This document shows positions 2,766 to 63,968 of a DNA stretch of 63,968 bases, in pieces. A model generated the notes under the pieces. It was not told the origin of the DNA. It saw only the letters and a program-made list of their open reading frames with translations, and made no database searches. Both the position numbers and the translations under genes were made by a program. The first letter of the stretch is position 1, and each line of letters begins with the position of its first letter. Origin of the DNA: Octopus bimaculoides (Eukaryota); NCBI RefSeq assembly GCF_001194135.2, contig NC_068984.1, positions 5,686,530-5,750,497 of the forward strand. The letters are read 5' to 3'.

Positions 2766-2811
2766 AGCACAACGTTTCGCTTGATCTACCCTCCAGCCTT
2801 CGTCAGGTGTC
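2766..2811 (-). ncRNA. Degenerate minimal type I hammerhead ribozyme motif
   Basis: Minus strand GACAC-CTGACGA-A-GGCTG..CAAGC-GAAA-CGTT-GTGCT; mismatches in stems I and II. Confidence 0.5.
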
Positions 2812-3085
2812 TTGGGGAAATTTCGAACCTGGGTTCTCATTCCTAAGGTATTTTTCGATGTTCTTATTAATATTATTATTATCCAGGTCACTGCCTGGAA
2901 TCAAACTCGGAATCGTGGGGTTAGTAACCCGCGCTCTTAACCACTACGCCATATGCCCGTGGGCATAGTGGTTAAGAGCGCGGGCTACTAACCCCAAGAT
3001 TCCGAGTTCAATTCTAGGCAGTGATCTGAATAATAATATCGAAAAATACGTTAGGAATGAGAACCTATGTTCGAAATCACCCCAA

Positions 3086-3131
3086 AACACCTGACGAAGG
3101 CTATAGGGTATATCAACCGAAACGTTGTGAT
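3086..3131 (+). ncRNA. Degenerate minimal type I hammerhead ribozyme motif
   Basis: AACAC-CTGACGA-A-GGCTA..CAACC-GAAA-CGTT-GTGAT; core intact, stems mutated. Confidence 0.5.
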
Positions 3132-11534: not shown

Positions 11535-11706
11535 TCTTTAAGAAGTTTGCTTCCCGACCATATTCTTTCCGGTTCAGTTCCGCTGCGTGGAGACTGGGAC
11601 ATATTCTTTATACTATATCATCGGATCGACCAAAGACGTGTGACTGGATTTGGTAGACGGAAACTGAAAGAAGCCCACCACCTGTGTGGTTTTTGGTATA
11701 TATGCT

Positions 11707-12481: not shown

Positions 12482-13357
12482 ACAATTCGGACGGAAGAAA
12501 CGCCACACTCCATTTTTGATTGATGCACTGTATTATTGCTAATTTTCTTATGAAGAAGCAGATTTGTCGCCAGAATATCTTCTCTCTCTCTCTCACATAC
12601 ATACATTGTGTTTGTGTATTAACTGCAAAGAGATACCGAGTTGTACATTAGCAGAGCTGTGCAAACTTCAGATCCTATTAATGGTTGAGAAATTTGTCCA
12701 ACATACACTCACGTTGATCTCGCAATGAATTAAACATTTCCTGACTGGTGTTCTACTAACCCAATATATTACGGTTCCACCACCATCACGCAGCCGCCTC
12801 CATTTTAAACTCCACAAATACATGAATAAGTGCACTAAACCAAAACGAAACAAATCAAAAACAATTTCAAGCCAACAGTTGAGATTCTTTTCAAACATAC
12901 AAGTCTGTATTTGACAAGTTCATGTCATTATCATTTAGAAAAATCTAAAGACTTATATTTAGTATAAATGGAACTAAAATCCGCTACATTTGTTGCCTTA
13001 AGGCAGTTATTATCAGCTCTTCAAGCAACTGACGACGTGAAGTACCACATTTAACAATGTCCAGCCACCTAACTTGCCTCTCACAATAATCAACAAATTA
13101 ACAGTTAAGACTTTATTCGGTTTGACTTTTTACACTCAATTACGGTTCAATTTTCTTATGTTATTTTCTTCCTTTTTGTTTTTAACTTTTTGCAAATACA
13201 TAAAGAAAATAATAAGAGTGAAAGTAGCCCAATGTAGGTTTCATTTCTGATGGAACTCACTACAGGCAAGATGGCTAAATGTATGAGATTTTGTGGGGGT
13301 TTTACGCCATGCTGGGAGTTGAGAGATGTGAACGTCTTTTACCCTTTTACTCTTTTC

Positions 13358-13706
13358 AGTCATTTCACTGTGGCCATGCCGGAGCACCGCCTTTTGTCGA
13401 GCCAATCGACCCGAGGACTTATTCTTTGTGAGTCTAGTACTTATTCTATCGGTCTCTCTTGCCGAACTGCTAGATTACGTGGACGTAACCACACCAGCAT
13501 CGGTTGTCAAGCGATGTTGGGGGGGGGGACAAAAACAGACACATATACATATATACGACGGGCTTCTTTCACTTTCTGTCTACCAAATCCACTCACAAGG
13601 CTTTGGTCGGCCCGAGGCTATAGTGGAAGACACTTGCCCAAGGTGCCACGCAGTGGGACTGAACCCGGAACCATGCGGTTCGTAAGCAAGCTACTTCCCA
13701 CACAGT
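13358..13706 (-). mobile_element. SINE family A, near full length
   Basis: Reverse complement colinear with 37207-37598. Confidence 0.9.
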
Positions 13707-14211
13707 CAAGTTTTTTTTTTTTAAGCTAAAGGATCTGTGTTCTCCTTCCTTTAAACTTTCTACTAATAAAAACCTTGATTTTTGTGTGTTGGACTTATAT
13801 TCTCCATTGCCACCATCCGGGCTGTTGTCGCCAATAGGTTCCAAATGGAATGGAAATGCTGTCCTCGATTCGTAAAACTCCCAAAACCTCAACCGCGTAC
13901 TAGAGAAACTTAACTTGGCAATTTAAACAAATGATGATACACACCTACAGTAATAACTGGACAACAATAACAAGAAGATGCTAACAAAGAAATTTAGAAT
14001 AGTTTATTGCCTTCCTATCGATGTTGATCAATCATTGCAGTAAAATGTGGGACTGAAATATTGTTCTCATGATTACATTCTCTTGTTTTTCACTTTTTAT
14101 ACACAATTATTGTTTTGTTTGTTTTTCCTTTTGCCATTGTGTTTGTTTCTTGTAATTATTATGATTATAGTTATTTCGCTGACAAACGAGTACAACATCT
14201 TATGACCTTCG

Positions 14212-17949: not shown

Positions 17950-18545
17950 GTGATTTCGGGCTCTCATTCACTGCGTGGCACCTTAGGCAAGCCTTGTACT
18001 AGGGCCTTCTACAAACTCCTATGAACGAATTTGGCAGGTGGAAACTGTGGAAAGCTGTCATTAAATCTATGGCTCCACGCACACGCACACACACACACAC
18101 ACACACGTACGTGTGTATATATATATATGAAAGAGAGATCCTACCATGTATGTGTGTATGTATATATATATATATATATGAAAGAGAGATCCTACCATGT
18201 ATGTATGTATGTATGTATGTCTATATATATATATATATATATGAAAGAGAGATCCTACCANNNNNNNNNNGTATATATATATATATATATGAAAGAGAGA
18301 TCCTACCATGTATGTATGTATGTATGTATGTATATATATATATATATATATATGAAAGAGAGATCCTACCATGTATGTCTTTGTGTATCACATCCCCATC
18401 GCTTGACCAACCGGTGTTGATTTGTTTCCATAAGTGAGCGGTTCAGCAAATGGCACCAATAGAATACGTAAGATGCTTCCTAAAAACAAAACCAAACCAA
18501 ACCAAAGCACGTAGAACACTGCTCTCTGTTTGTTCGACTAAAAGC
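17950..18545 (+). mobile_element. SINE family A with an expanded internal minisatellite; spans a 10-N gap (18261-18270)
   Basis: Family A 5' and 3' halves separated by five copies of (TA)n-GAAAGAGAGATCCTACCA-(TGTA)n at about 18110-18380. Confidence 0.75.
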
Positions 18546-19234: not shown

Positions 19235-19632
19235 GCAGGAGTGGCTGTGTGGTAAGTAGCTTGCTTACCAGCCACATGGACTTGGGTTCAGTCCCATTAC
19301 GTGGCACCTTGGGCAAGAGTCTTCGACTATAGCCTCGAGCCAACCAAAGCCTTGAGAGTGGATTTGGTAGACGGAAACTGAAAGAAGACCATCGTATATA
19401 TATATATATATATGTAATGTGTTTGTGTGTCTGTTTGTCCCCCCAAAATCGCTTGACAAGCGATGCTGGTGTGTTTACGTCCTCGTAACTTAGCGGTTTG
19501 GCAAGAGACCGATAGAATAAGTACTAGGCTTACAAAGAATAAGCTCTGGGGTAGATTTGCTCGACTAAAGACGGTGCTCCAGCATGGCCGCAGTCAAATG
19601 ACAGAAACAATTAAAACAATAAAAGAATAAGC
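19235..19632 (+). mobile_element. SINE family A, near full length
   Basis: GCAGGAGTGGCTGTGTGGTAAGTAGC head through CTCCAGCATGGCCGCAGTC tail. Confidence 0.9.
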
Positions 19633-26129: not shown

Positions 26130-26540
26130 CGGCTGAGAGAATGGTTAGCACACCGAGCTAACGTCCATCTTTACGTTCTGAGTTTAAATTCCGCTGGGGT
26201 CAACTTTGCCTTTCATCTTTTTCGGAGTCCATAAACTAAGCATGTTTCGAGTTCGGGAAGTAGGATTGATGTAATCAACTCAAACATTTCCCCAACTGGT
26301 TGTCTTTGCATCACAATTTCAAATTATTATTATTATTGGCGAGCTGGCAGAATCGTTTGCTAGCATGGCAAAACGCTTAGCGGCATTTCGTCTGTCTTTA
26401 TGCTCTGAGTTCAACTCCGCTGCGGTCGACTTTGCTTTTCATCCTTTCGGAGGTCGATATAATCGACTCATCTCCTTCCCACCAAAAATGGCCGCCCTGT
26501 TGCAAAATTTGAAACCATTATTATTATTATTATTATTATT
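26130..26540 (+). mobile_element. Two tandem SINE family B copies, each ending in (TTA)n
   Basis: GGCGAGCTGGCAGAATCGTT..GAGTTCAA.TCCGC..GACTTTGCCTTTCATC; copies at about 26130-26335 and 26338-26540. Confidence 0.85.
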
Positions 26541-27232: not shown

Positions 27233-27445
27233 CAGCAAGCTGACAGAAACGTTTGCACGCTGATCAATTATTTAGCAGCATTTTGTCCGTCTTTATGTTC
27301 TGAGTTCAAATTCTGCCGAGATCGACTATGCCTTTCATCTTTTCAGGGTCGATAATAACAGTACCAGTCAAGTACTAGGGCTTATGTAATCACATTGCTC
27401 TCTACCCCGAACTTCCTGGACTCGTGGCAACATTTGAAATCAATA
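27233..27445 (+). mobile_element. SINE family B
   Basis: GGCAGCAAGCTGACAGAA..CTGAGTTCAAATTC..GCCTTTCATC. Confidence 0.8.
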
Positions 27446-28696: not shown

Positions 28697-29385
28697 ATGA
28701 GCTGGCAGAATCGGTAGCACGCTGGACGAAATGCTAAGTGATATTTCGCCCGTCGCTCCGATCTGAGTTCAAATTCCACCGAGCGAGGTTGACTTTGTCT
28801 TTCACCCTTTGGAGATCGATAAATTAAGCACCAGTTGAGTACTGGGATCGATCTAATAGACTGGCCCCTTCCCCACAAATTTCAGATCTTGTGCTAATAG
28901 TAGAAAGGATTATTATTATTATTGTTGCCGTTGTTAAAGTGGTAAGCTGGCAGAATCGTTAGCATGGCGAGCAAAATGCTTAGAACGTAGCGATGGGCGA
29001 ATTACTGCTGAGTTCAAAATCCGCCGAGGTTGACTTAGCCATTCATCCTTTCGGAGTCGATAAATCAATTACCGGTCGTCGATGTAATCAACTAGTCCCC
29101 CTCCTCCAAAATTCTAGGCCTTGTGCCTAGAGTAGAAAGGATTATTATTATTATTATTAAGATGATGAGCTAGGAGAATCCTTTACTTAGTGGCATTTCG
29201 TCCGTCTTTACGTTCCGAGTCCAAATTCCGTTGAGGGGTCGACTTTGCCTTCCATCCTTTTCCGGTCAATAAGATAAGTGCCAGTTGTTTACTAGGAGTC
29301 GATGTAATCGGTTTAATCCCTCCGCTAAAATTGGTGGCCTTGTACCAAAATTTGAAGCCAGTATTATTATTGTTATCATTATTAA
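28697..29385 (+). mobile_element. Three head-to-tail SINE family B copies
   Basis: Copies at about 28697-28925, 28943-29160 and 29165-29385, each ending in an ATT-rich tail. Confidence 0.85.
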
Positions 29386-29476
29386 TCCTTATCTTTCACA
29401 TTATAAAGTTATTGTAGGCTATATTAGTTAGGACGGATGTCATTAGTGTGTGAGTGTATATATATATGTATATATT

Positions 29477-29661
29477 TTGTTTCAGTCATTGGACTGCAGT
29501 CATGCTTGAGCACCGCCTTCAGCCCAGCAAATCGACTCCAGGACTTATTCTTTGTAAGCGTAACGGTCACTTTTGCCGAACCGCTAAGTTACGGGGACGT
29601 AAACACACCAACATCAGTTGTCAAGCAATGGTGGTGGGGGGACAAACAGACACACAAACAT

Positions 29662-29694
<33 letters not shown>

Positions 29695-29850
29695 GGACGG
29701 ACTTCTTTCAGTTTCCGTCTATCATATTCACTCACAGAGGATTTGGTCGGCCTGAGGTTATAGTAGAAGACACTTGGCCAAGGTGCCACGCACTGGGACT
29801 GAACCCGGAACCATGTGGTTGGTAAGCAAGCTACTTACCACACAGCCACT
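29477..29850 (-). mobile_element. SINE family A, near full length
   Basis: Reverse complement colinear with 19235-19632. Confidence 0.9.
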
Positions 29851-30640: not shown

Positions 30641-31147
30641 TATTACAGAAGTACATTTGAGGCAGATGGAGAGATTTTTGCCAAACGATTAAATACAAGT
30701 TGAACAAATATGATGCTACCAGCGTTCGAGTGTTTCATCTTTTCTCAAGAAATTTAGTTGAAAACTTTATCTAAAACAAAATAGCCAAAGAAATTGCAAA
30801 TAGATTATTCTCCTACAATTAAAGGGAGAAATAAGTCGCTTAAACATTAGAGGCGTCTGATGTTCTAGAAATTTTGTAACTTATTGCCTCACTAATTACA
30901 GTATTTGAGTGTTCAATCAATATAAAATCGCAAATGACAAATTAATGAGTGTTTGACAACGTCAAGAATATGGCAACAGCCTCATCAGCGAACTCAAACC
31001 CAAAATCAGTATGACTTCTTTTTAGATAAAGATTTATAAAGAGCAGATATCATTTCCGATGCAGAAGACGTATTACCTGACGTATACATAAATAGGTCAG
31101 TTGATAGTGGAACAAATAGCTAAAGAGGTAGAAAAGTTGATTACAAA

Positions 31148-32560
31148 AATTTGCAATGTACACGGATATGTTGGGTTTTATTTCTTGCCTTTCTGAGTTC
31201 TTCGAGTGACTTTTTAGAAGAATCACTCTTGTATTGCATCAGAGCTGCGCACTTTGCTTCGATAACTGGTTCGAACTCAGAGCCCAGCACTGAACCAATC
31301 TGGGTTTTGCCTTTCACTCATGCCGAAAGTATCTATTGATGTGGTATACAAAGCTTCCCGGATATAATTCCACCTACTTTCAGCAGAGGAGGATGAGCAG
31401 CTACTGAGGGCAACCTTGATAGAAACAGCAAAAAATTTTAGCAGTGTAGGGTCCGAGGTTCTGGTAGTGTTAATACGTGGTCTGCCAATTTTCTTGGAGT
31501 GATGGACTATTTTAGGCAGAATCCTCACCCTGCTTATTATTAGTGAATGATCTCTGTCACAATCCACACTATGGTAACTACGGGTCAATTGGACAATTCA
31601 GAAAGGATCTTCGTGTGATGATGAGATCCGACTGATGCCAGTGGTGAGATATTGGATGTCTCCAAGATGCCTTGTGGGATGGTATGTTGGCAAAGAGTAT
31701 GTTGATGATGCACAGGTTATGGTATGTGCAAAATCAAGCAGTCTCTGACCATTGTCATTCATGTTGCCAATGCCAAAATGTCCAACACAAATGGGCCGCG
31801 AGTCATGGTCAGATCCCACGCGAGCGTTAAAATCTCCTAGAAGGGTAGATGTTTCCGCTGGATGGTATGCTTCTGGTGACAGTTGAGATCTTTGTAGAAC
31901 TGGTCCTTGGTCTCCTCTGCGCTGTAGAGAGTAGGAGCATAGATGCTCAGTAGATGTACTGAGTCAAAAGAGCTCAAGACGCGCAGAGAGAGGGTACGCT
32001 CAGTGCCTCCTGATGGTGGTTCTATTGAGGAAAGTAATGAGTTTCTCACTGCAAAGCCAACACTATGCTGACGAGGTTCCTCTGGGTCTCTTCCCTGCCA
32101 AAAGAAGGTCAAATCCTGTTCTTAGAGTTTGCTGTTTGAGGGGGTCCTGTCTCCTGCAGTTCAGCAATGTCTATGTTGATCCTCTTTAGTTCGCAATCAA
32201 TAACGGCCGTCTTTCTTGTGTCTTCAACCCTGGTGGTTTCTGATCTTTTGATTGTTTGCCTGGTGCAGAGGTTGCAGGCCGTTTTTCAAGTCAAACTCTT
32301 AGCTTCAAACAGCCAATGAAGCAGGCGGCTTGTGGCGGGTCAGTACCTTATTAACCAGAGGCTGCCCAACTTGAGGTGGGCAGTAACTAACCAGTGGCAC
32401 ACAAGGGTCCCTCCCACCTTCAGAGGTAACCCGTAGCGCCCATATCCTACGCCAGTCAGAATGGACTTATCACTCGTGACTGCTACCTCCAAAGTTTTTC
32501 TGCCACTTTTTACAGCAGCACTGAAGTGTCCTCTCCAGTTTTGCACTAATAATACTAAGA
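31148..32560 (-). mobile_element. RTE-clade LINE 5' portion (5' UTR plus apurinic-like endonuclease domain), frameshifted, RT missing
   Basis: TFFWQG..HSVGFAVRNSL..ERTLSLR..SIYAPTL..KDQFY, FNARVGSD..GHFGIGNMNDNGQRLL, RSYHSVDCDRDHSLI..NPDWF (track ORFs 31837-32112, 31598-31819, 31277-31588). Confidence 0.85.
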
Positions 32561-32828: not shown

Positions 32829-33030
32829 ATTTTTGTGTGTTGTACCCCTATCACCGCTTGACAACCGGTGTTGGAGGATTTAAGTCTCCGTAACTTAGCG
32901 ATTCGGCTAAAAGTGTCCAATAGAATACGTACCAGGCTTCAAATCAATCCCGGGGTCGATTTGAATGACTAAAACCGTTCAAGGCGGTGCTCCTGTATGG
33001 CCTCAGTCAACTGACAGAAACAAAAGATAC
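32676..33030 (+). mobile_element. SINE family A with internal deletion
   Basis: CATGGTTCCGGGTTCAGTCCC head, internal (TA)n(TG)n, family tail. Confidence 0.8.
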
Positions 33031-37206: not shown

Positions 37207-37598
37207 GCAGGAGTGGCTGTGTGGTAAGTAGCTTGCTTACCAACCACATGGTTCCGGGTTCAATCCCACTGCGTGGCACCTTGGGCAAGTGTCTTCTACT
37301 GTAGCCTCGGGCCGACCAAAGCCTTGTGAGTGGATTTGGTAGACGGAAACTGAAAGAAGCCCATCGCATATATGTATATGTATATATATGTGTTTTTGTG
37401 TGTCTGTGTTTGTCACCCCCAACATCGCTTGACAACCGATACTGGTGTGTTTACGTCCCCGTAACTTAATGGTTCGGCAAAAGGAGACCGATAGAATAAG
37501 TACTAGGCTTCCAAAGAATAAGTCCTGGGGTCGATTTGCTCGACTAAAAGGCGGTGCTCCAGCATGGCCACAGTCAAATGACTGAAACAAGTTAAACA
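37207..37598 (+). mobile_element. SINE family A, best-preserved copy (used as reference)
   Basis: tRNA-like head with B box GGTTCAATCCC, internal (TA)/(TG) tract, conserved 3' body. Confidence 0.92.
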
Positions 37599-39144
37599 GT
37601 ATACGTAAATACGTGTGTGTGTGTGTGTGTGTATAGAGAACTAACAGTACTTAATATAAACAGATTATATGTATATATATCGAATTCTTGAGGCATATAC
37701 ACTGATGGTGATCCAGCATGGCCACAGTCTTTGGGCTGAAGTGCATAAAAGAATATGTATGCGGCTCATGCCTCAAGAATTCGATCGAAGTCCATGCCAC
37801 TTATTTAGAGGAAGAAATCTAAATATGTGATAATAATGAAAAGGAATCGAGTAAAGATTTATTTGTAAATGTTATCAACAAAATAACAAAATCTAAATGC
37901 CTAAGTTATGAAATTAACAGTAAAAAATTGCAGCTTGGCCTTTCGCATTTAATAATTCCATTTAAAGATGGTTTATCTGTTGGTATTGGCATCTTTTTTA
38001 AAATCTCAACTGACAGGTCTGTTTGCTTATTATTGCTGTTGGTGTCTTCCTTTCAATGTAAGATTCTGATATTTAATCAAGTTTCCGTCAGTAGAAGCGA
38101 CACTAACGGCAATCCATGACTTAAAGCCGACTTATGTCAAGGCTAAAATAAACGAACATATGATGCCCACTGCTGTACCGGACGCCTCTGAGGTGTTAGT
38201 CATATTAAAACCAATAGGCTTGTAGCAGTCTTTTCTCAGTCACCAAATTCTGGCGAGTAAAATCATTTTGCCGTAGAAAACGTAGATTATGTGTCAAGGA
38301 GAGGTTGACAGGAAATTGGCGCCATTTCCCTATAAGAATGCGATTTACTTGAGCAACTGATCAAAAATACGTGATTTATACGTTTAATATAAAAATTAAA
38401 GTGAAACTCAAAATATCACGTTATTGATTAAAACTCGTGCCGTTTCGTTACGAAATCGTGTCTCGTTTTATACCGCTTAATACAAACGCAGATGGTACTA
38501 TAACCTGATGCTTGTAGTGTTACATCGCAGACTAACTTCTCCGAATCCCTCACATACACCTGTCTCACGTGAGTTGTAACTGACTTGTTTTATTCGGATA
38601 CTAAATCTTCTGTATTAGCTATTAAACTCTTTGTTTATGGATGTCACATGCGTCAGAAGTTAAACCCATTATACTATCTTCCAGAACCACACCAAAACAT
38701 CAGAGCTAAACGTCCCTGTGGCCACACAAAAGCTGATTCTAAGAGTTAGTTACCTTCCTTATATATATTCCATTGACTGCCAGTCTAGTTGAATGTTCGA
38801 CCACGGGTGACGCTGTATGTACCGTGTATTTGTATACATCATTTACTCTGCGCTTGTTAGTGACGATACTAAAATTATGCGTGACTCAGCTTATTTCGTT
38901 CAAAGTTCCCCTTAGCTATGGCTACTACACTAAATGATACTATCAAGCGTAATCACAGATCCATTTTTCTTTTAAGTTTCGAACAGTTCACAGTACTTTA
39001 GACGCATGGCAGGTTCATAATTAGTAGGTTAGGGGTGTGTTGGTAACTTACTATTGCGTGACCTTGTGGTCCGGCAAAACAGTTAATCCGTCAAGGCTTT
39101 GCAACCAACTATACCGGAGGGTCTTGTACAAGTGTATCCAATGT

Positions 39145-39560
39145 TGGTGCAGGCATGGCTGTGTGGTAAGAAGTTTGCTTCCCAACCACATATTTCAAGC
39201 TAAATTCGACTGCGTGGCACCTTCTACTATAACCCCGGGCCGACCAAAGCCTTGTCAGTGGATTTCGCAGCCGGAAACTGAAAGAAGTCCTTTATGTGTA
39301 TCTCTGCGAATATTTTTGTCCACCTCCATCAGTGCACTCCTAAACTTTTAAAGTCTTTGAAATATGTTTTAACGTTGACAACCAGTGTTGGTAGGTTTAC
39401 GTTCCCGTAACCAAGTCGTTCGGCAAAAGAGGCCGATGGAATAAATACCAGGCTTAAAACACAAAAATTACACAGAATCGATTCGTTCGACTAAAAATTC
39501 TTCAAGGTGGTGCTGCTGCATGACTGCAGTCTAATGATAGAAACAAATAAAAGATAACAG
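39145..39560 (+). mobile_element. SINE family A carrying an approximately 44-bp foreign insertion
   Basis: Colinear with the reference except 39331-39374 (see findings). Confidence 0.8.
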
Positions 39561-43745: not shown

Positions 43746-44224
43746 AGTGCCGGTTTTAAAGGATGGATCAAGATTAGCATGGACATAATTGAGGGTGTGT
43801 GGGCGGGTCTACGCGTGGACTCTTTAAAACTAATTGCACATTCTTTACAATAACGTCGCTTCACTATGCAGTTACTTATGTGTTTCTACAAACATTACTT
43901 TTTTTTTTTATTTTCCCCCTTTTTCCCCCAAATGATTGCAATATCATTTAATGTTTTATCATCTTCAAATATTTTTAATAAACTCATATTAGTTTTGCTA
44001 ATTGTCATACCTCCATTAACTCATCGTTATTTCGAAAAGTTCTGTGGAGTTTGTTTCACTAATGAGGACACAATAAAATCGAAACTTGGCCAGAAATGTC
44101 TCTTTTAATATCCGGAATAAACAGAGTAATATTTATCATTGAGCTTGGGGTTTGGTTCACAGCAATATTATGAAACATATTAATAACTAACCCAAATAAA
44201 ACACATACATAGCATAACTATTAT

Positions 44225-44412
44225 ATAATAATAACTTCGAAAAATACTTTAGGAATGAGAACCCAAGTTCAAAATTTCCCCCAAGACACCTGATGAAGGC
44301 TGGAGGGTATATCAGCCGAAACGTTGTGTTAACAACAAACAAGATGAGGACAAATATCCGTCAAATGTAAAATAATGTACATAACTCCTCATCTCTTAAA
44401 TATAGAACTGTA
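44225..44412 (+). mobile_element. Headless copy of the hammerhead-bearing element
   Basis: Near-identical to 3030-3208, from CGAAAAATAC.TTAGGAATGAGAACC to CTCTTAAATATAGAAC. Confidence 0.85.
44285..44330 (+). ncRNA. Minimal type I hammerhead ribozyme (Penelope-like-element style), predicted cleavage after GUU at 44325
   Basis: Stem I GACAC/GTGTT; core CTGATGA (44290-44296) plus an extra A; stem II GGCTG/CAGCC with a 10-nt loop; GAAA; palindromic AACGTT stem III. Confidence 0.7.
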
Positions 44413-46194: not shown

Positions 46195-46280
46195 ATTTCA
46201 ACTGGTATTTCGTTTTATCGATTTTGAAAGGATGAAAGGCTAAGTTGACCTCAGCAGAATTTGAACTCAGAACGTATACA
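46195..46280 (-). mobile_element. SINE family B fragment
   Basis: GGATGAAAGGCTAAGTTGACCTCAGCAGAATTTGAACTCAGAACG. Confidence 0.75.
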
Positions 46281-51834: not shown

Positions 51835-52042
51835 TATATGTTTGTGTGTCTGTGTTTGCCCCCGCCACCATCGTTTGTCAACCGATGCTGGTGTGTTCAC
51901 GTCCCCATATCTTAGCGGTTCGGCAAAAGAGACCGATAGAATAAGTACTAGCTTTACAAAAAATAAAAGTCCTGGGGTCGATTTGTTCGATTTAAGGCGG
52001 AGCTCCAGTCAAATGACAAACAAATAAAAGGATAAAAGAATA
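51835..52042 (+). mobile_element. SINE family A, 3' half
   Basis: GTCAACCGATGCTGGTGTGTTCACGTCCCC..GGGGTCGATTTG. Confidence 0.85.
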
Positions 52043-52218: not shown

Positions 52219-52532
52219 NNNNNNNNNNNNNNNNNNNNNNNNNNNNNNNNNNNNNNNNNNNNNNNNNNNNNNNNNNNNNNNNNNNNNNNNNNNNNNNNNN
52301 NNNNNNNNNNNNNNNNNNNNNNNNNNNNNNNNNNNNNNNNNNNNNNNNNNNNNNNNNNNNNNNNNNNNNNNNNNNNNNNNNNNNNNNNNNNNNNNNNNNN
52401 NNNNNNNNNNNNNNNNNNNNNNNNNNNNNNNNNNNNNNNNNNNNNNNNNNNNNNNNNNNNNNNNNNNNNNNNNNNNNNNNNNNNNNNNNNNNNNNNNNNN
52501 NNNNNNNNNNNNNNNNNNNNNNNNNNNNNNNN
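52219..52532. other. Assembly gap (314 N); smaller gaps at 18261-18270, 56500-56509, 59179-59194
   Basis: N runs. Confidence 0.99.
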
Positions 52533-52760
52533 ATATATATATATATACACTTATATATATATATATATACACTTATATATATATATATACACTTATATAT
52601 ATATATATACACTTATATATATATATACACTTATATATATATATACACTTATATATATATATATATATATATATACACTTATATATATATATATACACTT
52701 ATATATATATATATACACACTTATATATTTATATATATACACATACACACACATATATAT
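52533..52760. repeat. (TA)n-CACT minisatellite
   Basis: About eight units of ATATATAT..ATACACTT. Confidence 0.9.
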
Positions 52761-53785
52761 ATCGTAACATTTGACAGAAAGGCGACAGAAGCACTGGGGA
52801 AAATTTGAGAGAGAGGAGAGGCGATAGAAAGGCAACCAGATAGAAGGGAGGAGGGGAGAGAGCGAGAGATTAAGAGAAACATAAGGAGTGGGAGAAATAA
52901 GAAAAAAGCACTTAGATTACATATATCATATTCATAGAATTGGAAAAGTGAAATCATAGGTGATCGATAGATCAATAATAAACCTAAAATAAAAAGAGCA
53001 CAGATAGGAGGTAGGTAGAAATTAGAGCGTGAGTAAGTGTGAGGGAGAGAAAGGGAGTGGTGGTGGGGGTAGAACATGAATAGAAAGATATCGACAAGGC
53101 AAAGAAATGAATGTGTGCGTGTATGCATTTGTGTGTGTGTATATATATATATATATGTGTTTGTGTGTGTGTGTATTTTTATATGTATGTGTGTGCATGT
53201 ATGCGCGTGTGTGTGTGTAGACACACACGTACACGAATTGTAAAGTTCCGCGTATCTTTCCATTTACATAACTCCATTTTATTATTGTACTCAAGTTCTG
53301 CATTTGACGTAATTCTATATTAAGTTCTGCTTCATTGAGCTCTTTTAGAACTAACATTTTCCTCTTCGTATTCTTCTTAATATTATTATTAGAGAAGTTT
53401 CTGGATATTTACTCAAATCGTTTGAAATAGTAGATGCATATCTCTGTCATATCACACCATACCGTCTTAAAAATGAAAGGAAAATTTGGGTAAATTCATC
53501 GAACTTTAAAGGATTGGTGACAACTGTAGCTGATAATCGCAAATGTCACCTGATCAAAGTGGATCTTGAAGTAGATAAAAAAAAAAAACAATAACCTAAT
53601 GTAAGAAATCGCTTTACTAATTTCTAGAATGTCATCCGCGATTTGCGCTGTATATATACATCCTCGTTTGGTACGGGTGTTCAATTCATGAATCATCTCC
53701 ACGCACGTTGTAAATGGAATGCGACAGAGATTCGTTGACACCAAACACGCATTTTACAACAGTAAAACCTTTCACTTTAACGTAC

Positions 53786-55930: not shown

Positions 55931-56576
55931 ACGATTTATACACATTTTCAGCAGTTGCTTCGTAATCATTACTAATATAGAGGAACAGATTCGTATGAAG
56001 GAATTGCACACAAACACAGCGCTGCGTCGAATGACTGCTGTCTCTGACGACGCCACATCGAAGTTTATTTTTCATAAGCCATACATGAATGCCGAAATTC
56101 GCTACAATGTTTCATGCTTTGTTTGTGTTGATTGGTAAGAAGACAATCTTTGTTATTCTTGAAAAGTCGTGATACCTAACACCTTTAAATACCTCATATC
56201 TTTGGTAAGTTTGCATCTTACATTAGCTTCTTGCAGATAGCATACCTTACCGATGTGAATAATTTGTCTAAAGTTTCTATTTTCATGTTCATTGCCACCG
56301 AAACGTTGCACACAAATCTCAAACTATTCTGGTGCCCATCATCAGTGTTCTTTGTGCAGTTTATTATTTTTTTTTTATAATTCTGAGTTAGGAGTTAGCC
56401 TCATTAGATTGGAAACTGTTAGCTGTATTTCGTTCTTGTTTCACACATATTACATCTCTCCACTTCATGTATCTATCTAGATCTTATATATATATATATN
56501 NNNNNNNNNGTGTATATATGTGTTCGTTCTACGAATCTAATAAATCACACGCATATGCGAGACACTCTCTTTCTCC

Positions 56577-56612
<36 letters not shown>

Positions 56613-57459
56613 GATATGTGAACGTAAGTGTATGTAACAGTTTTTTTACTTATTTGTTTATTTGTGTGTGTGTGTGTGTACACATACTCATCTATGCGTT
56701 ATCAGGAATAGAGGGTGCCGCCGAGGAACACTAATTGTTCTCCTCTCTCTTTAGAGTTTATATTTTCTTCAGTCCGTAGTGAATTTATCAGAAACGAAAC
56801 TGCAGCTAAATTTAGCAGTTAGCCATCATGTCTTCGCCTTTTCCAAAATAAAAACATCCCCAAAGCTAATCACGGTTCGACAAACACAGTTATTTCACAT
56901 CAATTGGCCAACAAGCATTCAACATTACTCACAAAGTTTTCCACCAAAATATATCCGAACAGAAAATCCATCTTGTCATAGTCTTTCATAAAATATTAGC
57001 TTGGCTGTAAATATGTTGTTGTTTTTTTTCTTTTATTCTTTAATAATCTTTTCTTTTCTTCACACAAAAGAACATTCCCACAATTGATTTGGACAAAGGA
57101 AACCGTTTTCAATTATAACATACTCTGGGAGCCATGTCTTAAGTTGTTGCTCACCGAGACGTATCCGAAATACTGTGTGTGTGTGTGTAAATCACTTGGG
57201 TGTTGTGAGTACATATCTAACACTGAGGTTTTCAACTTCAAGTGTAAATTCAATCTCTGCTAACTAAATATTGTACATTTATTCATGCGAAATAAATGTA
57301 CTGCTGCAACTTCAATATCGTTTCCTTGAACTTTAGGACACATAAGGCCGGCTACTCAGTTTCCATACCATATAAGCAACCGGGGTCACTACATGGTCCC
57401 CTGAAAGGGACTTCGATTTGCTGCAGAGTTCAAGGTCAGAAGACATCGATCGCACTTGT

Positions 57460-57600
57460 TGACTAGTACTTAATTTTATCGAGCCTGAACGGATGAAAGG
57501 CAAAGTTGACCTTGACGGGATATGAACTCTAAACGTAAAGACCCGAAAGAAATACCACTAAGCGAGCTAACAATTCTGTAAACTCGCCGCCATTAAATAA
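57460..57600 (-). mobile_element. SINE family B fragment
   Basis: GGATGAAAGGCAAAGTTGACC..GAACTCTAAACG. Confidence 0.7.
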
Positions 57601-58836
57601 CGCTATAAAACCCTAAAAATGAAAGGCTCCATTAGATGTGGTTCGAGATAGGTTTTGTCTTAGCTTCATGGAACTTGACCATAAATCTGATTGCTCAGAA
57701 ACATCTTAGATTTAAACAACAGCGACTATATTCACACAAATCTAGCCGTCACTTCGTCTTTCACATGTCTACCGCAAAGTAAATATTTCCCGAAACACTT
57801 GCCCATCCATTATCCCAACTCAGTCATCAATGAACAAAAGAAAAAAAATACAAAACGTTTTAATATGTATGCTACGAAATGATCTAACAATGGTTATTGA
57901 AATCCAATAACATTACAATCTCTAGTAAATTTCTGGACAAGTGTATATACACACGCGGTATATACAGTCAAGTAATATATGTATACATATATATATATAT
58001 ATATAGTCTTTGGTCGCAGTCTAATGCCTGAAACAAATCTTGGGCACTGCTTTGCAGAATTATAGTTGAACGAATCGACCCCAGTGCTCATTTATTTTCT
58101 AGCCTGTTACTTATTCTATTAGTCCTTTTGCCTAAAAGCTAAGTTACGGGGATGTAAACACACCAACACCGGTTGTCTTGCAATGTTGCGGGACAAATAC
58201 TGGTACAAAGTCATACATACATACATATACACAACAAATTAAAATACCTCTTCTCGCCTTGTCACTGTCTCATTCGATCAAGAACGCCAGTAAAGCCACC
58301 TTCTGTCCATATACAACTACATATCTTTACGGAAACAGGGAGCCGTTGCTACTTCTCTGTCACTTGACTTGCTAGAAATGTATCGTTAATCTATTATATA
58401 AATTGAACATGGGCGACCGTTGTATTCTTTCTTGTCTCGCGGTTCACGGTCAAACGGCTGGGTGGATTCGCGTGAAAAATGGCAAACATGTGGAGACGGG
58501 TGCATAGGTTGGAACGCACTTAATATTTTCCCTAACACTCCATAGTCACCAAGAATATCGATTAAAACCTGCGTGTGTGTATCAATGAAGCCATTCATAC
58601 ATACATAATTACTCTCTCTCACTCTCTCTCTGTCAATCACTCACTACAAGAACTGAATGAAAAATTTTAGTTATCTCTCTGGCTTTCTCTCTCTATCTCA
58701 TATACACACACACACACACCATCAACATTACTCTCTCCTGTCTCGCACACCCCATCAAACATATACACACGCACAATTCTTCCGTATCACGCCAACGTCA
58801 AAAGCAGTTCAGTCATAAAACTGTCCATGTCTCTTT

Positions 58837-59536
58837 CCATTTGACGCCCACTTCAAAAGATCCCCTTTCCCCAAAACACATATTTAAAAAATATTTTCAC
58901 TTGTCCGGCCATTGATCGAGAGATAAAACACAAACCACCTCCTGCTGACTGCAAAACTCCAGCCAAAGCCGCAAAAAACAGGCACACATGCACACACGTT
59001 CATTTCATGTATTTCACTTTCTCTATGGACACACGTCCAATACAATGACTCTCACATTTTCGTCTTCAACAGGTATGCATTTATTCTATAATATAAATTG
59101 TTTTCCTACAAGGGTATAACAATTACTTATTCCATACTTCTTCATTTAGCTTTTATCTTCACTTTTCTTAAATTGGAANNNNNNNNNNNNNNNNCCATTT
59201 GACGCCCACTTCAAAAGATCCCCTTTCCCCAAAACACATATTTAAAAAATATTTTCACTTGTCCGGCCATTGATCGAGAGATAAAACACAAACCACCTCC
59301 TGCTGACTGCAAAACTCCAGCCAAAGCCGCAAAAAACAGGCACACATGCACACACGTTCATTTCATGTATTTCACTTTCTCTATGGACACACGTCCAATA
59401 CAATGACTCTCACATTTTCGTCTTCAACAGGTATGCATTTATTCTATAATATAAATTGTTTTCCTACAAGGGTATAACAATTACTTATTCCATACTTCTT
59501 CATTTAGCTTTTATCTTCACTTTTCTTAAATTGGAA
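58837..59536. other. 342-bp exact duplicate on either side of a 16-N gap (probable assembly artefact)
   Basis: 58837-59178 equals 59195-59536; the mirrored right arm has only one copy. Confidence 0.85.
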
Positions 59537-59579
59537 ACGTCTGCTATTCATTCTTACATAAAATTTCCCCGATAATTCT

Positions 59580-62420
59580 GACGATTTCCTGGAAAGTTCC
59601 AAGGTTGAGCTACTTCCAGGATTTCCGAGGATTTCCTGGAAATATCTGAGGAAGGGCTACTTCGTAGAAAGTTAGTAGGATTTCCTGGAAAGTTCCGAGA
59701 ATATCTTGGAAATATTGAGCTACTTCCTGGAAAGTTCCGAGGATTTCATGGAAATATCTGAGAAAGAGCTGCTTCCTGGGAAGTCCCGAGGATGGTACTT
59801 CTTGGAAAGATCCGAGGATTTCCTGGGAAGTTCCGAGGACTTCAATATCTGAGAAATGACCAATTCCTGGAAAGTTCTTAACATGGAACTTCCTGGAAAG
59901 TTCAGAGGATTTCCTGCAAGGGCTGCTTCCTGGAAAGTTCCAAGGATAGTACTTCCTGAAAAGATTCCAGGATTTCATGAGAAGTCCCGATGATTTAATC
60001 GAAGGTCTAATTCCTGGAAAATTCCGAGGATGGTACTTCATGGAAAAATCCGAGGATTTCATGAGAAGATCCAAAGAAGGGTTACTTCCTGGTAAATTCC
60101 AGGATGGAACTTCCTGCAAAGTTCCGAAGATTTCCTCGAATGTTCCGAGGAATTTCTAGAAAAAAACGCCGTGGATGATCTACTTTCTGGAAAGTTCCGA
60201 GGATGGAAATAGCTGGGAAGTTCCGATCATGAAAGTACCTGCAAAATTCCGTGGATTTCCTGGAAGGGCTGGTTCCTGGAAAGTACTGAGGATTTAATAT
60301 CCGAGGAAGAGCTACTTCTTGCAAAGTCCAGAGGATGGAACATCCTGGAAGGTTCCGAGAATTTCTTAGAAAGATCCAAGGATAAAATACATCATGGAAA
60401 CTTCCGAGGATGGTACTTCCGGGAAAGTTCCAAGGATATCATGGAAAGATACAACATTGAGCTACTTCATGGAAACTTCCAAGGATTGTTCTTCCTGGGA
60501 TGTTCCAAGGATTGATCTTCCTGGGATGTTCCAATGATTTCCCGGAAGGACTGCTTCCTGGAAAATATCGAGGTTGGTACTTCCTGGAAATATCCGGATT
60601 TCAATATCAGAGCTATTTACTGGAAATTTCCGTGGATGGTGCTACATGGAAAAATCCGAGGATTTCATGGGAAGTCCCGAGGAAGGGTTACTTCCGGTGA
60701 AGTTCTAAGAATGGAACATCCTGGAAAGTTCCGAGGATTTCCTCAATGATCCGAGGCCGAACTACTTGCTCGGAAATTCCGAGGGTTTTAAAAAGAGATC
60801 CGAGGACAAGGTACTACCTGGGAAGATAAGCTACTTCCTGGAAAGTTCCGAGGATTTCCTGGAAGGGCTGCTTTCTCGAAAGGCTACTTCCTGGGAAGTT
60901 CCAAGGATGGAACTTCCTGGAAAGTTTCGAGGCTGGAACTTCGAACTTCCCAGGAAGTAGTCCTTTCTCGGAAATTGAAAACTGCAGAACTCCCCCACGA
61001 AATCCTCGGATCCTTCCTGGAAATACCATCCTGGGAACTTCCCACGAGGCAGCCCTTCCAGGATATCCTCAGACCTTTCCAGGAAGTAGCTTTTCCTCGG
61101 ATCTTTCCAGGAAATACTGGGGACTTTTCAGGACAAATTCTCTGAATATTCTAGGAAGTAGTTCATCCGCAGCTATTTCGAGAAAATCCTCGGAAATTCT
61201 CTGGAAGTTCCATCCTCGGAACGTCTCATGAAATCATCCAATCTTTCCAGCAAGTACCATCCTCGGAACTTTCCCTAAAGTAGTCCTTCCACGAAATCAT
61301 CGAACTTTCCTTGAAGACCAATCTCCGGAACTTTCCAGGCAGTAGTTCAACCTCGAGTATTTCCACGAAATCCTGGGAACTTTCCAGGAAGTAGCTCTTC
61401 CTAGGATGTTTCCAGAATGTACCAACCTCGATATTTTCCAGGAAGCAGTCCTTCCGGGAAATCCTTGGAACTTCCCAGGAAGATCAATCCTCGAAACTTT
61501 CCATGAAGTAGCTCAACGTCGGATCTTTCCGTGATATCTTCGGAAATTTCCAGGACAAATCCTTGGAACTTTCCCGGAAGTACTATCATCGGAATTTTTT
61601 AGGAAGTATTTAACCCTTGGATCTTTCCAGGAAATTCTCGGAACCTTCCAGGAAGTTCCATCCTCTGGACCTTGCAAGCTCTTCCTCGGATATTAAATAC
61701 TCGAAACTTTCCAGGAATCGGCCCTTCCAGGAAATCCACGGAATTATCCAGGCTGTTCCATGATCGGAACTTCCCAGGTATTTCTATCCTCGGAACTTTC
61801 CAGGAAGTAGCCCATTCTCGGAAATTGATTTCCTCTGAACTTTCCAGGAAGTAGCCCTTCATCGGATTTTGAATTCCTCGGAACTTCCCAGGCAAACCTC
61901 GGAATTTTCCAGGAGGACAAATCCTTAGCACTTTCCAGGGAGTAGCTCATCCACGGATTTTCTTCCAGGAATTCCTCGAAACATTGGAGGAAATCTTCGG
62001 AACTTTCCAGGGAGTTCCATCCTGGAATTTACCAGGAAGTAACCCACCCTCGAGACTTCCCATGAAATCCTGGAATCTTTTCAGGAAGCAGTCCTTCCAG
62101 GAAATCCTCGGGACTTTCCAGGAAGTTCTTTGTTCGGAACCTTCATCAGATATTGAAATCATCGGAACTTCCCAGGAAATCCTCGGGACTTTCCAGGGAG
62201 TTCCATCCTGGAATTTACCAGGAAGTTCCATCCTGGAATTTACCAGGAAGTAACCCACCCTCGGGACTTCCCATGAAATCCTGGAATCTTTTCAGGAAGT
62301 ACTATCATTGGAACTTTCCAGGAAGTAGCTCAATATTTCCAGGATAACCTCGGAACTTTCCAGGAAATCCTACCTTTCTACGAAGTGGCCCTTCCTCGGA
62401 TATTTCCAGGAAATCCTCAA
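59580..62420. repeat. Degenerate satellite array of 21-28 bp units with core TTCCTGGAAAGTTCC; orientation flips near 60941
   Basis: Left half reads ..ACTTCCTGGAAAGTTCCGAGGA..; right half reads its reverse complement ..TCCTCGGAACTTTCCAGGAAGT.. Confidence 0.92.
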
Positions 62421-63632
62421 AATTATCGGGGAAATTTTATGTAAGAATTAATAGCAGACGTTTCCAAGTTAAGAAATGTGAAGATAAAAGCTAAATGAAG
62501 AAGTATAGAATAAATAATTGTTATACATTGTAGGAAAACAATTTATATTATAGAATAGATACATACATGTTGAAGACGAAAATGTGAGAGCCATTGTATT
62601 GGATGTGTGTCCATAGAGAAAGTGAAATACATGAAGTGTGCATGTTTTTTGCGGCTTTGGCCGGAGTTTTGCAGTCAGCAGGAGGTGGTTTGTGTTTTAT
62701 CTCTCGATCAATGGCCGGACAAGTGAAAATATTTTTAAAATGTGTTTTGGGGAAAGGGGACCTTTTGAAGTGGTCGTCAAATGAAAAGACATGGACAGTT
62801 TTATGACTGAACTGCTTTTGACGTTGGCGTGAGACGGAAGAATTGTTGTGCGTGTGTGTGTGTGTTTGATGGGGGTGCGAGACAGGAGAGAGTAATGTTG
62901 ATGGTGTGTGTGTGTGTATATGAGATAGAGAGAGAGAAAGCCAGAGAGAGATAACTAAAATTTTGCATTCAGTTTTTGTAGTGAGTGATTGACAGAATAA
63001 CCGAGAGAGAGTAATTATATATGTATGAATAGCTTCAGTGATACACACTCATATACACACACGCAGGTTTTAATCGATTTTCTTGGTGACTATGGAGTGT
63101 TATGAAAAATATTAAGTGCGTTCCAATCTATGCACCCGTCTCCACATGTTTGCCATTTTTCACGCGAATCCACCCAGCCGTTTGACCGTGAACCGCGAGA
63201 CAAGAAAGAATACAACGGTCGCCCATGTTCAATTTATATAATAGGTTAACGATACATTTCTAGCAAGTCAAGTGACAGAGAAGTAGCAACGGCTCCCTGT
63301 TTCCGTAAAGATATGTAGTTGTATATGGACAGAAGGTGGCTTTACTGGCGTTCTTGATCGAATGAGACAAGGCGAGAAGAGGTATTTTAATTTGTTGTGT
63401 ATATGTATGTATATATGACTTTGTACCAGTATTTGTCCCGCAAGATTGCAAGACAACCGGTGTTGGTGTGTTTACATCCTCGTAACTTAGCTTTTAGGCA
63501 AAAGGACTAATAGAATAAGTAACAGGCTAGAAAATAAATGAGCACTGGGGTCAATTCGTTCAACTATAATTCTGCAAAGCAGTGCCCATGATTTGTTTCA
63601 GGCATTAGACTGCGACCAAAGACTCTCTCTCC

Positions 63633-63667
<35 letters not shown>

Positions 63668-63968
63668 ACTTGACTGTATATACCGCGTGTGTATATACAC
63701 TTGTCCAGAAATTTACTGGAGATTGTAATGTTATTGGATTTCCATAACCATCGTTAGATCATTTCGTAGCATACATATTAAAACGTTTTGTATTTTTTTT
63801 CTTTTGTTCATTGATGACTGAGTTGGGATAATGGATGTGCAAGTGTTTCGGGAAATATTTACTTTGCGGTAGACATGTGAAAGACGAAGTGACGGCTAGA
63901 TTTGAGTGAATATAGTCGCTGTTGTTTAAATCTAAGATGTTTCTGAGCAATCAGATTTATGGTCAAGT

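Follow-up and report, generated by a model that had tools for sequence, protein, structure and literature searches.

A 5.9-kb palindrome in the genome of Octopus bimaculoides, probably an inverted duplication turning within a minisatellite

How does a palindrome of several kilobases, with arms that meet inside a tandem repeat, come to lie in an octopus chromosome? The question is raised by the last part of a 63,968-nucleotide stretch of Octopus bimaculoides DNA (GCF_001194135.2, NC_068984.1, positions 5,686,530 to 5,750,497), which we analysed as a whole and call the window. A preliminary description of this DNA offered two alternatives, a large foldback-like element or an inverted duplication nucleated at the satellite. 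The second fits all the measurements reported here and the first found no support. Judging from sequence comparisons, the palindrome is probably the product of one inverted segmental duplication of ordinary non-coding octopus DNA, with its axis inside a pre-existing minisatellite of 21-26 bp units.

Results

Existence and extent of the palindrome

Comparison of the window with itself by blastn aligned 57673-59178 with 63968-62462 in inverted orientation (92.7% identity over 1539 columns, 2161 bits, E = 0). The arms are colinear in that orientation from the window edge to the axis and include gapless complementary blocks of 334, 317 and 289 nt at 96%, 98% and 93% identity, while the longest inverted repeats in the rest of the window are SINE pairs of at most 180 nt. 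This match, together with a single switch of strand in the array, bears out the giant palindrome of the preliminary description, although its size has to be revised: the span is 6296 bp as assembled and 5938 bp (about 5.94 kb) once 358 bp of gap and assembly duplicate are removed, in place of the 6.3 kb or more first proposed. Likewise, the non-array DNA inside the window comes to 1547 bp in the left arm and 1550 bp in the right; the earlier figure of about 1.9 kb after removal of the duplicate thus holds before removal, and 1.55 kb per arm remains after it. The right arm ends with the window at 63968, so that the lengths of palindrome and arms are lower bounds, and position 57673 simply mirrors the window's final base and is no biological boundary. 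Because the right arm is cut there, the outer ends, together with any TIR tips or TSD, fall outside the window. The features are listed in Table 1.

Table 1. Features of the palindrome, in window coordinates.
Feature	Position	Strand	Basis or remark
Left arm, outer non-array part	57673-59178	+	Pairs with 63968-62462; substitution identity 96.7%
SINE fragment, left arm	58052-58231	-	Relatives within the window; adjoins a (TA)n run at about 57960-58006
Assembly gap, 16 N	59179-59194	.	Really a negative gap (overlap); flanks identical over 342 bp
Artefactual second copy of 58837-59178	59195-59536	+	100% identity over 342 bp; abuts both gap edges
Left arm, final non-array bases	59537-59577	+	Aligned to about 62459-62419 in the right arm
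Minisatellite, left half, forward units of about 21-26 bp, e.g. GGATTTCCTGGAAAGTTCCGA	59578-60901	+	TRF periods; strand-specific k-mers
Inner stem, left side, CTACTTCCTGGGAAGTTC	60884-60901	+	18-nt exact inverted repeat with 60943-60960
Asymmetric centre (loop or spacer), 41 nt, about 1.6 forward units	60902-60942	.	Flanked by 18-nt stems
Minisatellite, right half, reversed units	60943-62418	-	Strand-specific k-mers; alignment to left half
Right arm, non-array part, cut by window end	62419-63968	-	Carries the mirrored SINE fragment at 63398-63566

The assembly gap

The gap in the left arm is an unmerged contig overlap, and removing it with its duplicate takes out the 358 bp subtracted above. 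The right arm holds a single counterpart of the 342-bp stretch, at about 62462-62783, which is 90.6% identical to 59195-59536. The centre of the palindrome lies 1.75 kb from the nearest N and was rightly described as free of gaps, the N run of Table 1 being the only one in the region. A true tandem duplication at the gap was also considered and rejected, as the copies are 100% identical and abut the N run precisely, and the stretch is present once in the right arm. A duplicate of 39 nt flanks another gap of the window, at 18261.

The minisatellite and the centre

Tandem repeats with TRF periods of 20-26, 42-44, 75 and 98 make up the inner part of the palindrome, and their orientation flips once, at about 60942: 16 plus-strand occurrences of the motif CCGAGGA lie within 59625-60848, and 11 of its complement follow within 61003-62393. 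Inside the array, the block 60160-60600 is matched in reverse by 61830-61400, with coordinate sums of 121990-121999, and the outer arms share this diagonal after the 358-bp correction (121641 + 358), which shows that the array was copied along with its flank. A duplication of about 190-210 bp (61988-62088 and 62174-62299, copies 95-96% identical) is found in the right half only.

The spacer, earlier described as essentially absent, is indeed short, but the centre is a 41-nt asymmetric loop held between exact 18-nt stems; in other registers the asymmetry reaches about 70 nt, with an alternative centre of about 71 nt (60933-61003). The repeat unit is rich in short dyads, and TTCCNGGAA appears 36 times in the array and not once in the other 57 kb of the window. 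One strand of a half-array folds on its own with z = -4.67, and the longest exact inverted match inside one half-array is 11-12 nt. As for microhomology at the turn, two registers fit within this dyad-rich unit; that of the original junction is beyond reconstruction because the units are repetitive and about 15% diverged, and the inner 350 bp or so on each side have no clear register.

Content of the arms

The arms consist of ordinary non-coding host sequence, comprising a SINE fragment, microsatellites and unique DNA, and the SINE fragment and microsatellites of the preliminary description were both found again. The SINE fragment is mirrored in the right arm and has six relatives elsewhere in the window at 74-86% identity (37373-37546, 19434-19567, 29566-29630, 51879-51988, 32860-32938 and 39377-39505). 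The two copies of the fragment are about 97-98% identical between the arms, against 74-86% to these relatives, which indicates that the SINE insertion predates the duplication and that the arms are ordinary genomic DNA.

Divergence between the arms

The outer arms had been said to differ by a few substitutions per 100 bp plus small indels, in agreement with the 3.3% substitutions and 16 small indels counted in the non-array part (K2P 0.034). The array halves differ by about 15% and 42 indels, many of them unit-sized (K2P about 0.16); the array is therefore 4-5 times more diverged than the flanks, yet it stays in register with the outer arms. No gradient of divergence toward the axis was seen, the contrast being one of array against non-array. 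The differences are spread evenly and include transitions, transversions and indels in microsatellite length, a mixture expected from time and not from an assembler. A divergence of 3.4% between the arms is 3 to 40 times the published heterozygosity of octopuses, 0.08-1.1% (PMC9795677, PMC6472339). O. vulgaris and O. bimaculoides differ by about 8% (PMC6472339); set against this figure, the arm K2P of 0.034 would predict that flank and array are still single-copy in the sister species. The longest tract identical between the arms, 130 bp, does not significantly exceed the 109 bp expected on average under the null (P = 0.19), and the variance in spacing gave P = 0.07; with differences so evenly distributed, the suggestion that arm-to-arm conversion maintains the palindrome is left unsupported. 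An ADAR footprint, or RNA-mediated origin, was rejected as there is no strand-biased excess of A>G: non-array DNA shows five A>G, five G>A, five T>C and ten C>T changes between the arms.

Searches for copies and homologues

Neither arm nor satellite has a further copy in the other 57 kb of the window, a scope that is tiny relative to a gigabase genome. Protein searches at E <= 0.001 returned no homologue, either for an array ORF or for arm and array ORFs joined into 661 aa; no Pfam domain was detected in the arm, array or other ORFs, and the window as a whole had no Rfam or tRNA match. LINE sequences in the window point by homology to an octopus close to O. bimaculoides. There was no record of the exact ORF products in other assemblies. 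A 22-mer of the satellite met two lone chance matches in metagenomes, in bacterial-looking coding contigs with no array, and the satellite core had no match in the full text of the literature searched, where 'foldback' with 'cephalopod' likewise found no paper. Within the window, a second palindrome, older and small, with an 11-nt loop, lies at 2693-3202; such events therefore recur within the same 64 kb.

Predicted RNA structure

The potential for kilobases of dsRNA attributed to this locus is true in silico, where the central 1451 nt fold as one hairpin of -804.5 kcal/mol. If transcribed, the locus would be predicted to form hairpin RNA with stems of at least 3 kb.

Discussion

The interpretation as an inverted duplication is supported because the turn lies within a dyad-rich unit, the array sits on the diagonal of the arms and the arms are ordinary DNA. 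The starting locus would have been a flank, with its old SINE fragment and microsatellites, followed by the minisatellite, and a break or a stalled fork may have occurred within the array. The exposed or nascent 3' strand could then have folded back on a short dyad of the unit (TTCC-N-GGAA, GGAAGTTCC) and been extended along its own complement or, alternatively, switched to the sister or the lagging template. In this way the array and no less than 1.55 kb of flank would have been copied in reverse, and only a loop some tens of nucleotides long would have stayed single-copy at the centre. Later and independent decay of the arms would account for the K2P of 0.034 in unique DNA and for the value of about 0.16, with unit-sized indels, in the array; this decay and the asymmetric centre of 41 nt would together abolish the long perfect symmetry that would otherwise cause instability. 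The fold-back or template-switch step is what we infer from these remains, as is the neutrality of the locus. A single event fits the contrast between array and flanks only if exchange within the array makes it mutate faster, or if the flanks underwent one round of homogenisation once the palindrome had formed. No function is indicated for the palindrome, and mobility is likewise not supported.

An assembly artefact, in which two alleles or paralogues of flank plus array were joined head to head within the array, or a longer spacer or array was collapsed, would seem the natural objection in a repeat-rich region where, 1.75 kb from the centre, the assembler demonstrably left a 342-bp overlap unmerged, and in a window with a 39-nt duplicate flanking the gap at 18261. 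Two alleles would also give colinear arrays, and the palindrome reaches the window edge. However, the 3.3% substitutions and 16 indels in unique DNA, with 15% in the array, rule out a fold-back chimera at the level of reads, and the excess of arm divergence over octopus heterozygosity, as well as the position of the centre in contiguous sequence, argue against an artefact. Since exact inverted matches within a half-array do not exceed 12 nt, a k-mer graph with any usual k would need reads with a true head-to-head junction to produce the turn, and the contig that bears the centre (59195 onward) has 383 bp of left flank of its own that differ from its right arm (90.6% identity over the 342-bp block). 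From the sequence evidence, an artefact is an unlikely source of the palindrome. We regard as quite unlikely that the locus is a non-autonomous DNA transposon of the foldback (FB-like) type, with the arms as very long TIRs made of outer flanking and inner tandem-repeat domains and a middle that is almost absent. The geometry does fit that scheme, in which TIRs combine a flanking domain with internal tandem repeats around a variable middle and there is no coding sequence (Tetris, PMC4079207; Galileo), and the lack of Pfam domains in arm and array ORFs is as for non-autonomous FB copies. On the other hand, arm and satellite recur nowhere in the other 57 kb of the window, a test of low power against a gigabase genome, and the protein, metagenome and text searches, which hardly sample an octopus genome, were all empty, with no related transposase, which non-autonomous copies would also lack. 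Moreover, the putative flanking domain, 1.55 kb long or longer, exceeds the maximum of 866 bp in Tetris (PMC4079207) and contains a decayed SINE fragment and several microsatellites, so resembling host DNA.

The palindrome could also be older, with an age given by the divergence of about 15% in its array, and have outer arms kept alike by arm-to-arm conversion as in sex-chromosome palindromes, which could imply selection, for instance as a source of hpRNA and endo-siRNA or as an ADAR substrate. That the outer arms are 4-5 times more alike than the array (K2P 0.034 against 0.16) would follow from such a history; the predicted transcript is one long hairpin, hpRNA loci are inverted duplications (PMC10317233), and hyper-editing in octopus is very strong and tied to dsRNA potential (PMC5625713). 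Yet the long identical tracts that conversion would leave are absent (both tests above), the arms have no detectable homology to genes and no strand-biased A>G between them, and a faster turnover of tandem repeats is a simpler account of the contrast between array and flanks. We therefore hold this history to be highly improbable. It is very unlikely, too, that we are dealing with a copy of an octopus foldback-type mobile element or with an hpRNA-type locus, neither class being described for cephalopods in the literature searched; if so, the locus would provide at least 3 kb of dsRNA for ADAR or the RNAi machinery, and a transposase or transcription factor might bind to the TTCCNGGAA-rich array, whose 2.8 kb contain 36 GAS/STAT-like sites.

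A large inverted duplication is a known kind of structural mutation, and the palindrome alone raises no new question. If the inverted duplication is real, it would preserve, as a clean fossil, a duplication made by fold-back or template switching in the germline of a cephalopod, with the dyad-rich minisatellite that nucleated it still recognisable, and its decay would illustrate how a palindrome becomes tolerable once its centre is asymmetric and its inner array has diverged. O. bimaculoides is reported to have an exceptionally high share of loci able to form long dsRNA, as well as hyper-editing (PMC5625713). This palindrome and the one at 2693-3202 are candidates for what lies behind both, and as a candidate source of dsRNA the locus lends itself to study with RNA-seq and editing maps. 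Two matters of assembly quality also come to light here, a 342-bp unmerged overlap that was entered as a gap and a palindrome that may be cut short in assemblies from short reads.

Like hpRNA loci and the substrates of ADAR hyper-editing (PMC10317233, PMC5625713), this locus is an inverted duplication that would give near-perfect intramolecular dsRNA if transcribed; unlike hpRNA loci, it has non-genic arms with no match to a target gene (no Pfam domain and no homologues in our searches). With the foldback transposons, such as Drosophila FB, Galileo and Tetris (PMC4079207, PMC3573991), it shares long inverted arms with outer unique and inner tandem-repeat domains, an almost absent middle and the lack of coding capacity; it differs in that its outer domain, which carries a SINE fragment and microsatellites, resembles host DNA, and in that no further copy lies elsewhere in the window. 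The TSDs of Tetris measure 8-10 bp (PMC4079207). In human constitutional inverted duplications formed by fold-back, a short single-copy spacer is bordered by inverted homology (PMC3907307), and palindromic amplification and replication template exchange are related models cited in the same work. The octopus palindrome is small by comparison, with arms of at least 3 kb, and appears to be interstitial; its spacer of 41 nt contrasts with the median of 3.4 kb for the human cases (PMC3907307) and, unlike a de novo rearrangement, it is 3-15% diverged, which points to an event long past in the germline and now fixed in the assembly. The resemblance lies in the architecture: as in the human fold-back duplications (PMC3907307), colinear inverted copies of chromosomal DNA face each other across a short axis spacer with short inverted homology at its edges, and the event would have been nucleated where short inverted repeats exist.

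Results

When the last 7 kb were compared with the window by blastn, positions 57673-59178 paired in inverted orientation with 63968-62462 (1539 alignment columns at 92.7% identity; 2161 bits, E = 0), and a repeat search returned gapless inverted arms of 334, 317 and 289 nt that are 96%, 98% and 93% complementary; inverted repeats in the remaining 57.6 kb reach at most 180 nt, and all but one are SINE pairs. The arms enclose a tandem array (TRF periods 20-26, 42-44, 75 and 98) whose units switch strand exactly once, as seen with the k-mer CCGAGGA and three further strand-specific k-mers. The arm pairing and this single switch confirm the palindrome proposed in the preliminary description. Its centre is free of gaps, the only N run of the region lying at 59179-59194.

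That run marks two contig ends that overlap but were left unmerged, with no sequence missing, because the 342 bp on either side of it are 100% identical and stop exactly at its edges, and because the right arm has a single counterpart, in sequence that continues through both its ends. The left arm is therefore continuous once 358 bp (59179-59536) are dropped. The assembly seems prone to small unmerged overlaps, since short repeats also flank the gaps at 18261-18270 and 56500-56509. After correction the palindrome measures 5938 bp within the window, against 6296 bp uncorrected and the at least 6.3 kb first proposed, and the earlier figure of about 1.9 kb of non-array DNA per arm, given as the value without the duplicate, proves to be the one that includes it. 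Position 57673 is the mirror of the last base of the window and no biological boundary; the outermost 150 bp of the arms are 98.7% identical, and the palindrome almost certainly extends beyond the window.

Features of the palindrome and of the remainder of the window (window positions)
Feature	Position	Remarks
Non-array DNA, left arm	57673-59178 + 59537-59577	1547 bp
Non-array DNA, right arm	62419-63968	1550 bp
342-bp block, two copies	58837-59178; 59195-59536	before and after the N run
Right-arm counterpart of block	~62462-62783	90.6% identical, 13 mismatches, 19 gap columns
CCGAGGA, + strand	59625-60848	16 occurrences
CCGAGGA, complement	61003-62393	11 occurrences
Innermost exact inverted repeat	60884-60901 / 60943-60960	18 nt, CTACTTCCTGGGAAGTTC
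Duplication, right half-array	61988-62088 and 62174-62299	~190-210 bp, 95-96% identical, one extra 25-bp unit
Its left-half counterpart	60007-60166	single, 83-85% identical
Arm SINE fragment	58052-58231; mirror 63398-63566	~180 bp
Interspersed-repeat fragment	57459-57562	relatives 27289-27371, 29186-29279, 46201-46276, 26168-26217 (76-82%)
SINE family copies, both orientations	13335-13708, 19235-19626, 37207-37650, 29428-29822, 11521-11702	75-91% pairwise
Small palindrome	2693-3202, centre about 2956	arms ~250 bp, 82% identical (blastn); inner 77-nt arms 90% complementary, 11-nt loop
Single copy of its outer part	44214-44377	90% identical, non-palindromic
LINE 5' part	31141-32537 (-)	decayed, frameshifted, endonuclease region
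Further assembly gap	18261-18270	10 N; 39-nt repeated stretch on its flanks
Further assembly gap	52219-52532	314 N; adjoins long (TA)n / 20-22 bp AT-rich array at 52533-52762
Further assembly gap	56500-56509	10 N; 15-nt repeat on its flanks

Fifty-nucleotide windows at 60160-60600 find their best right-half match at coordinate sums of 121990-121999, with 4 to 9 matches more than the second-best. These sums lie on the diagonal of the outer arms (121641 + 358 = 121999); array and flank were therefore copied as one piece. The register is ambiguous in the inner ~350 bp on either side of the centre. The innermost exact inverted repeat encloses a loop of 41 nt, and an alternative register from gapped local alignment leaves ~71 nt unpaired, so that in either register only some tens of satellite nucleotides make up the asymmetric centre and "essentially no spacer" is a fair description. 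The private duplication of the right half-array is younger than the palindrome.

The repeat unit consists of short dyads. The 2.8-kb array (59578-62418) contains 36 copies of one of them, TTCCNGGAA, which corresponds to the GAS/STAT-type consensus and is absent from the other 57 kb of the window, and TTCNNNGAA reaches 19.8 per kb in the array versus 0.47 per kb elsewhere; both enrichments may be a mere by-product of a dyad-symmetric repeat. Folded as single-stranded DNA, a 303-nt piece of one half-array has a predicted energy of -54.6 kcal/mol (z = -4.67 against shuffles).

Global alignment of the corrected left arm to the reverse complement of the right arm gave, in non-array DNA, 1448 matches, 25 transitions and 25 transversions (96.7% substitution identity, K2P 0.034), with 16 indel events (65 columns) nearly all within (TA)n, (CA)n, (CT)n or (GT)n runs and, in the array, 1035 matches, 90 transitions and 86 transversions (85.5%, K2P about 0.16), with 42 indel events (455 columns), many of them unit-sized (18-26 bp). 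The arms are thus unequal and no exact fold-back, as had been described. Divergence is four to five times as high in the array as in the flanks, either because exchange of unit variants within each arm inflates the apparent substitutions or because an older event was followed by a single homogenisation of the flanks; the data favour neither. The alignment shows no divergence gradient towards the axis, and the longest identical tract between the arms (130 bp, null mean 109, P = 0.19) lends no support to the suggestion of ongoing arm-to-arm conversion.

The SINE fragment and microsatellites reported in the arms are indeed there, and the SINE, which seems to resemble the abundant octopus SINE, is their sole interspersed repeat. 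It inserted and decayed long before the duplication, since its two arm copies are about 97-98% identical, compared with 74-86% for its six relatives elsewhere in the window, and the arms look like ordinary host DNA. Searching the other 57 kb at E <= 1e-3 gave no relative of the satellite or of the remaining arm sequence, arm and array ORFs contain no Pfam domain, and Rfam and tRNA scans of the entire window (GC 37.5%) gave no match. Just outside the mirrored part lies another repeat fragment, any mirror of which would fall past the window end. Translated ORFs of the SINE family carry the motif GLNPEPCGW, which may correspond to a tRNA-like head, and neighbouring inverted pairs (e.g., 13529-13708 / 19242-19415) could form ~180-bp dsRNA if co-transcribed. 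The small palindrome, also near-spacerless, has near its centre sequence that resembles such a head; the alternatives are a repeat duplicated head to head and a palindromic MITE-like element that has a solo half. The best protein relatives of the LINE endonuclease fragment (31141-32112, minus strand) are O. bimaculoides 'craniofacial development protein 2-like' (64% identity, E = 1e-97), and 31170-32537 matches the O. bimaculoides locus encoding this protein (GCA_001194135.2, CM046602.1:82659795-82680706) with 90% DNA identity over 1.38 kb; the separate ORF pieces of the LINE had no Pfam match. These similarities place the window in an octopus that is O. bimaculoides itself or closely related to it.

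Discussion

The palindrome most likely arose as an inverted segmental duplication whose point of nucleation was a dyad-rich minisatellite. A read-level fold-back chimera is ruled out, as it would have made identical arms. The serious form of artefact is two haplotypes joined head to head, and the proven assembler error in the same region and the collapsibility of arrays call for some caution. However, the arms show 3.3% substitutions in addition to indels, against genome-wide heterozygosities of 0.08% for O. bimaculoides and, for other octopods, 0.95-1.1% (PMC9795677; PMC6472339), and the differences, microsatellite length changes and evenly spread substitutions, look like evolutionary decay. 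In the centre-bearing contig (59195 onward) there are also 383 bp of left flank that differ from the right arm of the same contig. Because the longest exact self-reverse-complement match in one half-array is 11-12 nt, a k-mer graph would need true head-to-head reads to turn round. Overall, we regard an artefact as unlikely. A foldback transposon, the other origin initially suggested beside a duplication nucleated at the satellite, is a less favoured candidate that could still account for the structure: the layout here matches the scheme published for such elements, with a flanking domain followed by a tandem-repeat domain and a small middle (PMC4079207), and the ends of the palindrome, with any target-site duplication, fall outside the window. 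Nevertheless, an outer domain of at least 1.55 kb laden with SINE and microsatellites points to host DNA. The other 57 kb of the window contain no further copies, a copy-number test of almost no power. Exact look-up of ORF products, protein searches with array and arm ORFs and literature text searches gave no match, and a metagenome scan with a 22-mer gave two chance matches only, in bacterial-type coding contigs; these results say little because the collections do not sample cephalopod non-coding DNA.

An inverted duplication could have begun with a break or stalled fork within the array, followed by fold-back priming or template switch at a dyad of the repeat unit and by reverse copying of array and flank. 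Given the dyad-rich unit and the folding of half-array DNA, resected or lagging-strand array DNA would offer many sites at which a 3' end could fold back onto its own strand. In a series of human inverted duplications, all sequenced junctions had a short spacer, present in one copy and flanked by inverted (micro)homology, and the authors of that series state that 4-6 bp are enough in yeast (PMC3907307). The palindrome as it stands today has a comparable layout, with colinear arms, a loop of 41 nt and inverted repeats bordering that loop, and it is this layout, together with the dyad-rich array, that leads us to propose a fold-back or template-switch event. As O. vulgaris and O. bimaculoides differ by ~8% in aligned regions (PMC6472339), more than twice the flank K2P, the duplication would, at equal rates, be younger than their split and expected to be absent from the sister species. 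Little perfect symmetry is left, the longest exact inter-arm matches being 45 nt in the array (copies ~840 nt apart) and 130 nt in the flanks (~4.9 kb apart), so that persistence of the palindrome is consistent with the rule that distance and divergence between inverted repeats lower their instability (PMC10164571).

As RNA, the central 1451 nt are predicted to fold into a single hairpin (-804.5 kcal/mol). Very strong hyper-editing has been reported for O. bimaculoides, together with an exceptionally large share of loci that can form long dsRNA (PMC5625713); comparison of the arms reveals no A>G strand bias. The palindrome adds one more case to a familiar kind of structure, and its interest stays modest as long as neither mobility nor dsRNA production emerges from long reads, copy counts across the genome or RNA data. 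Hairpin RNA loci are inverted duplications (PMC10317233), an architecture that the palindrome shares with them.
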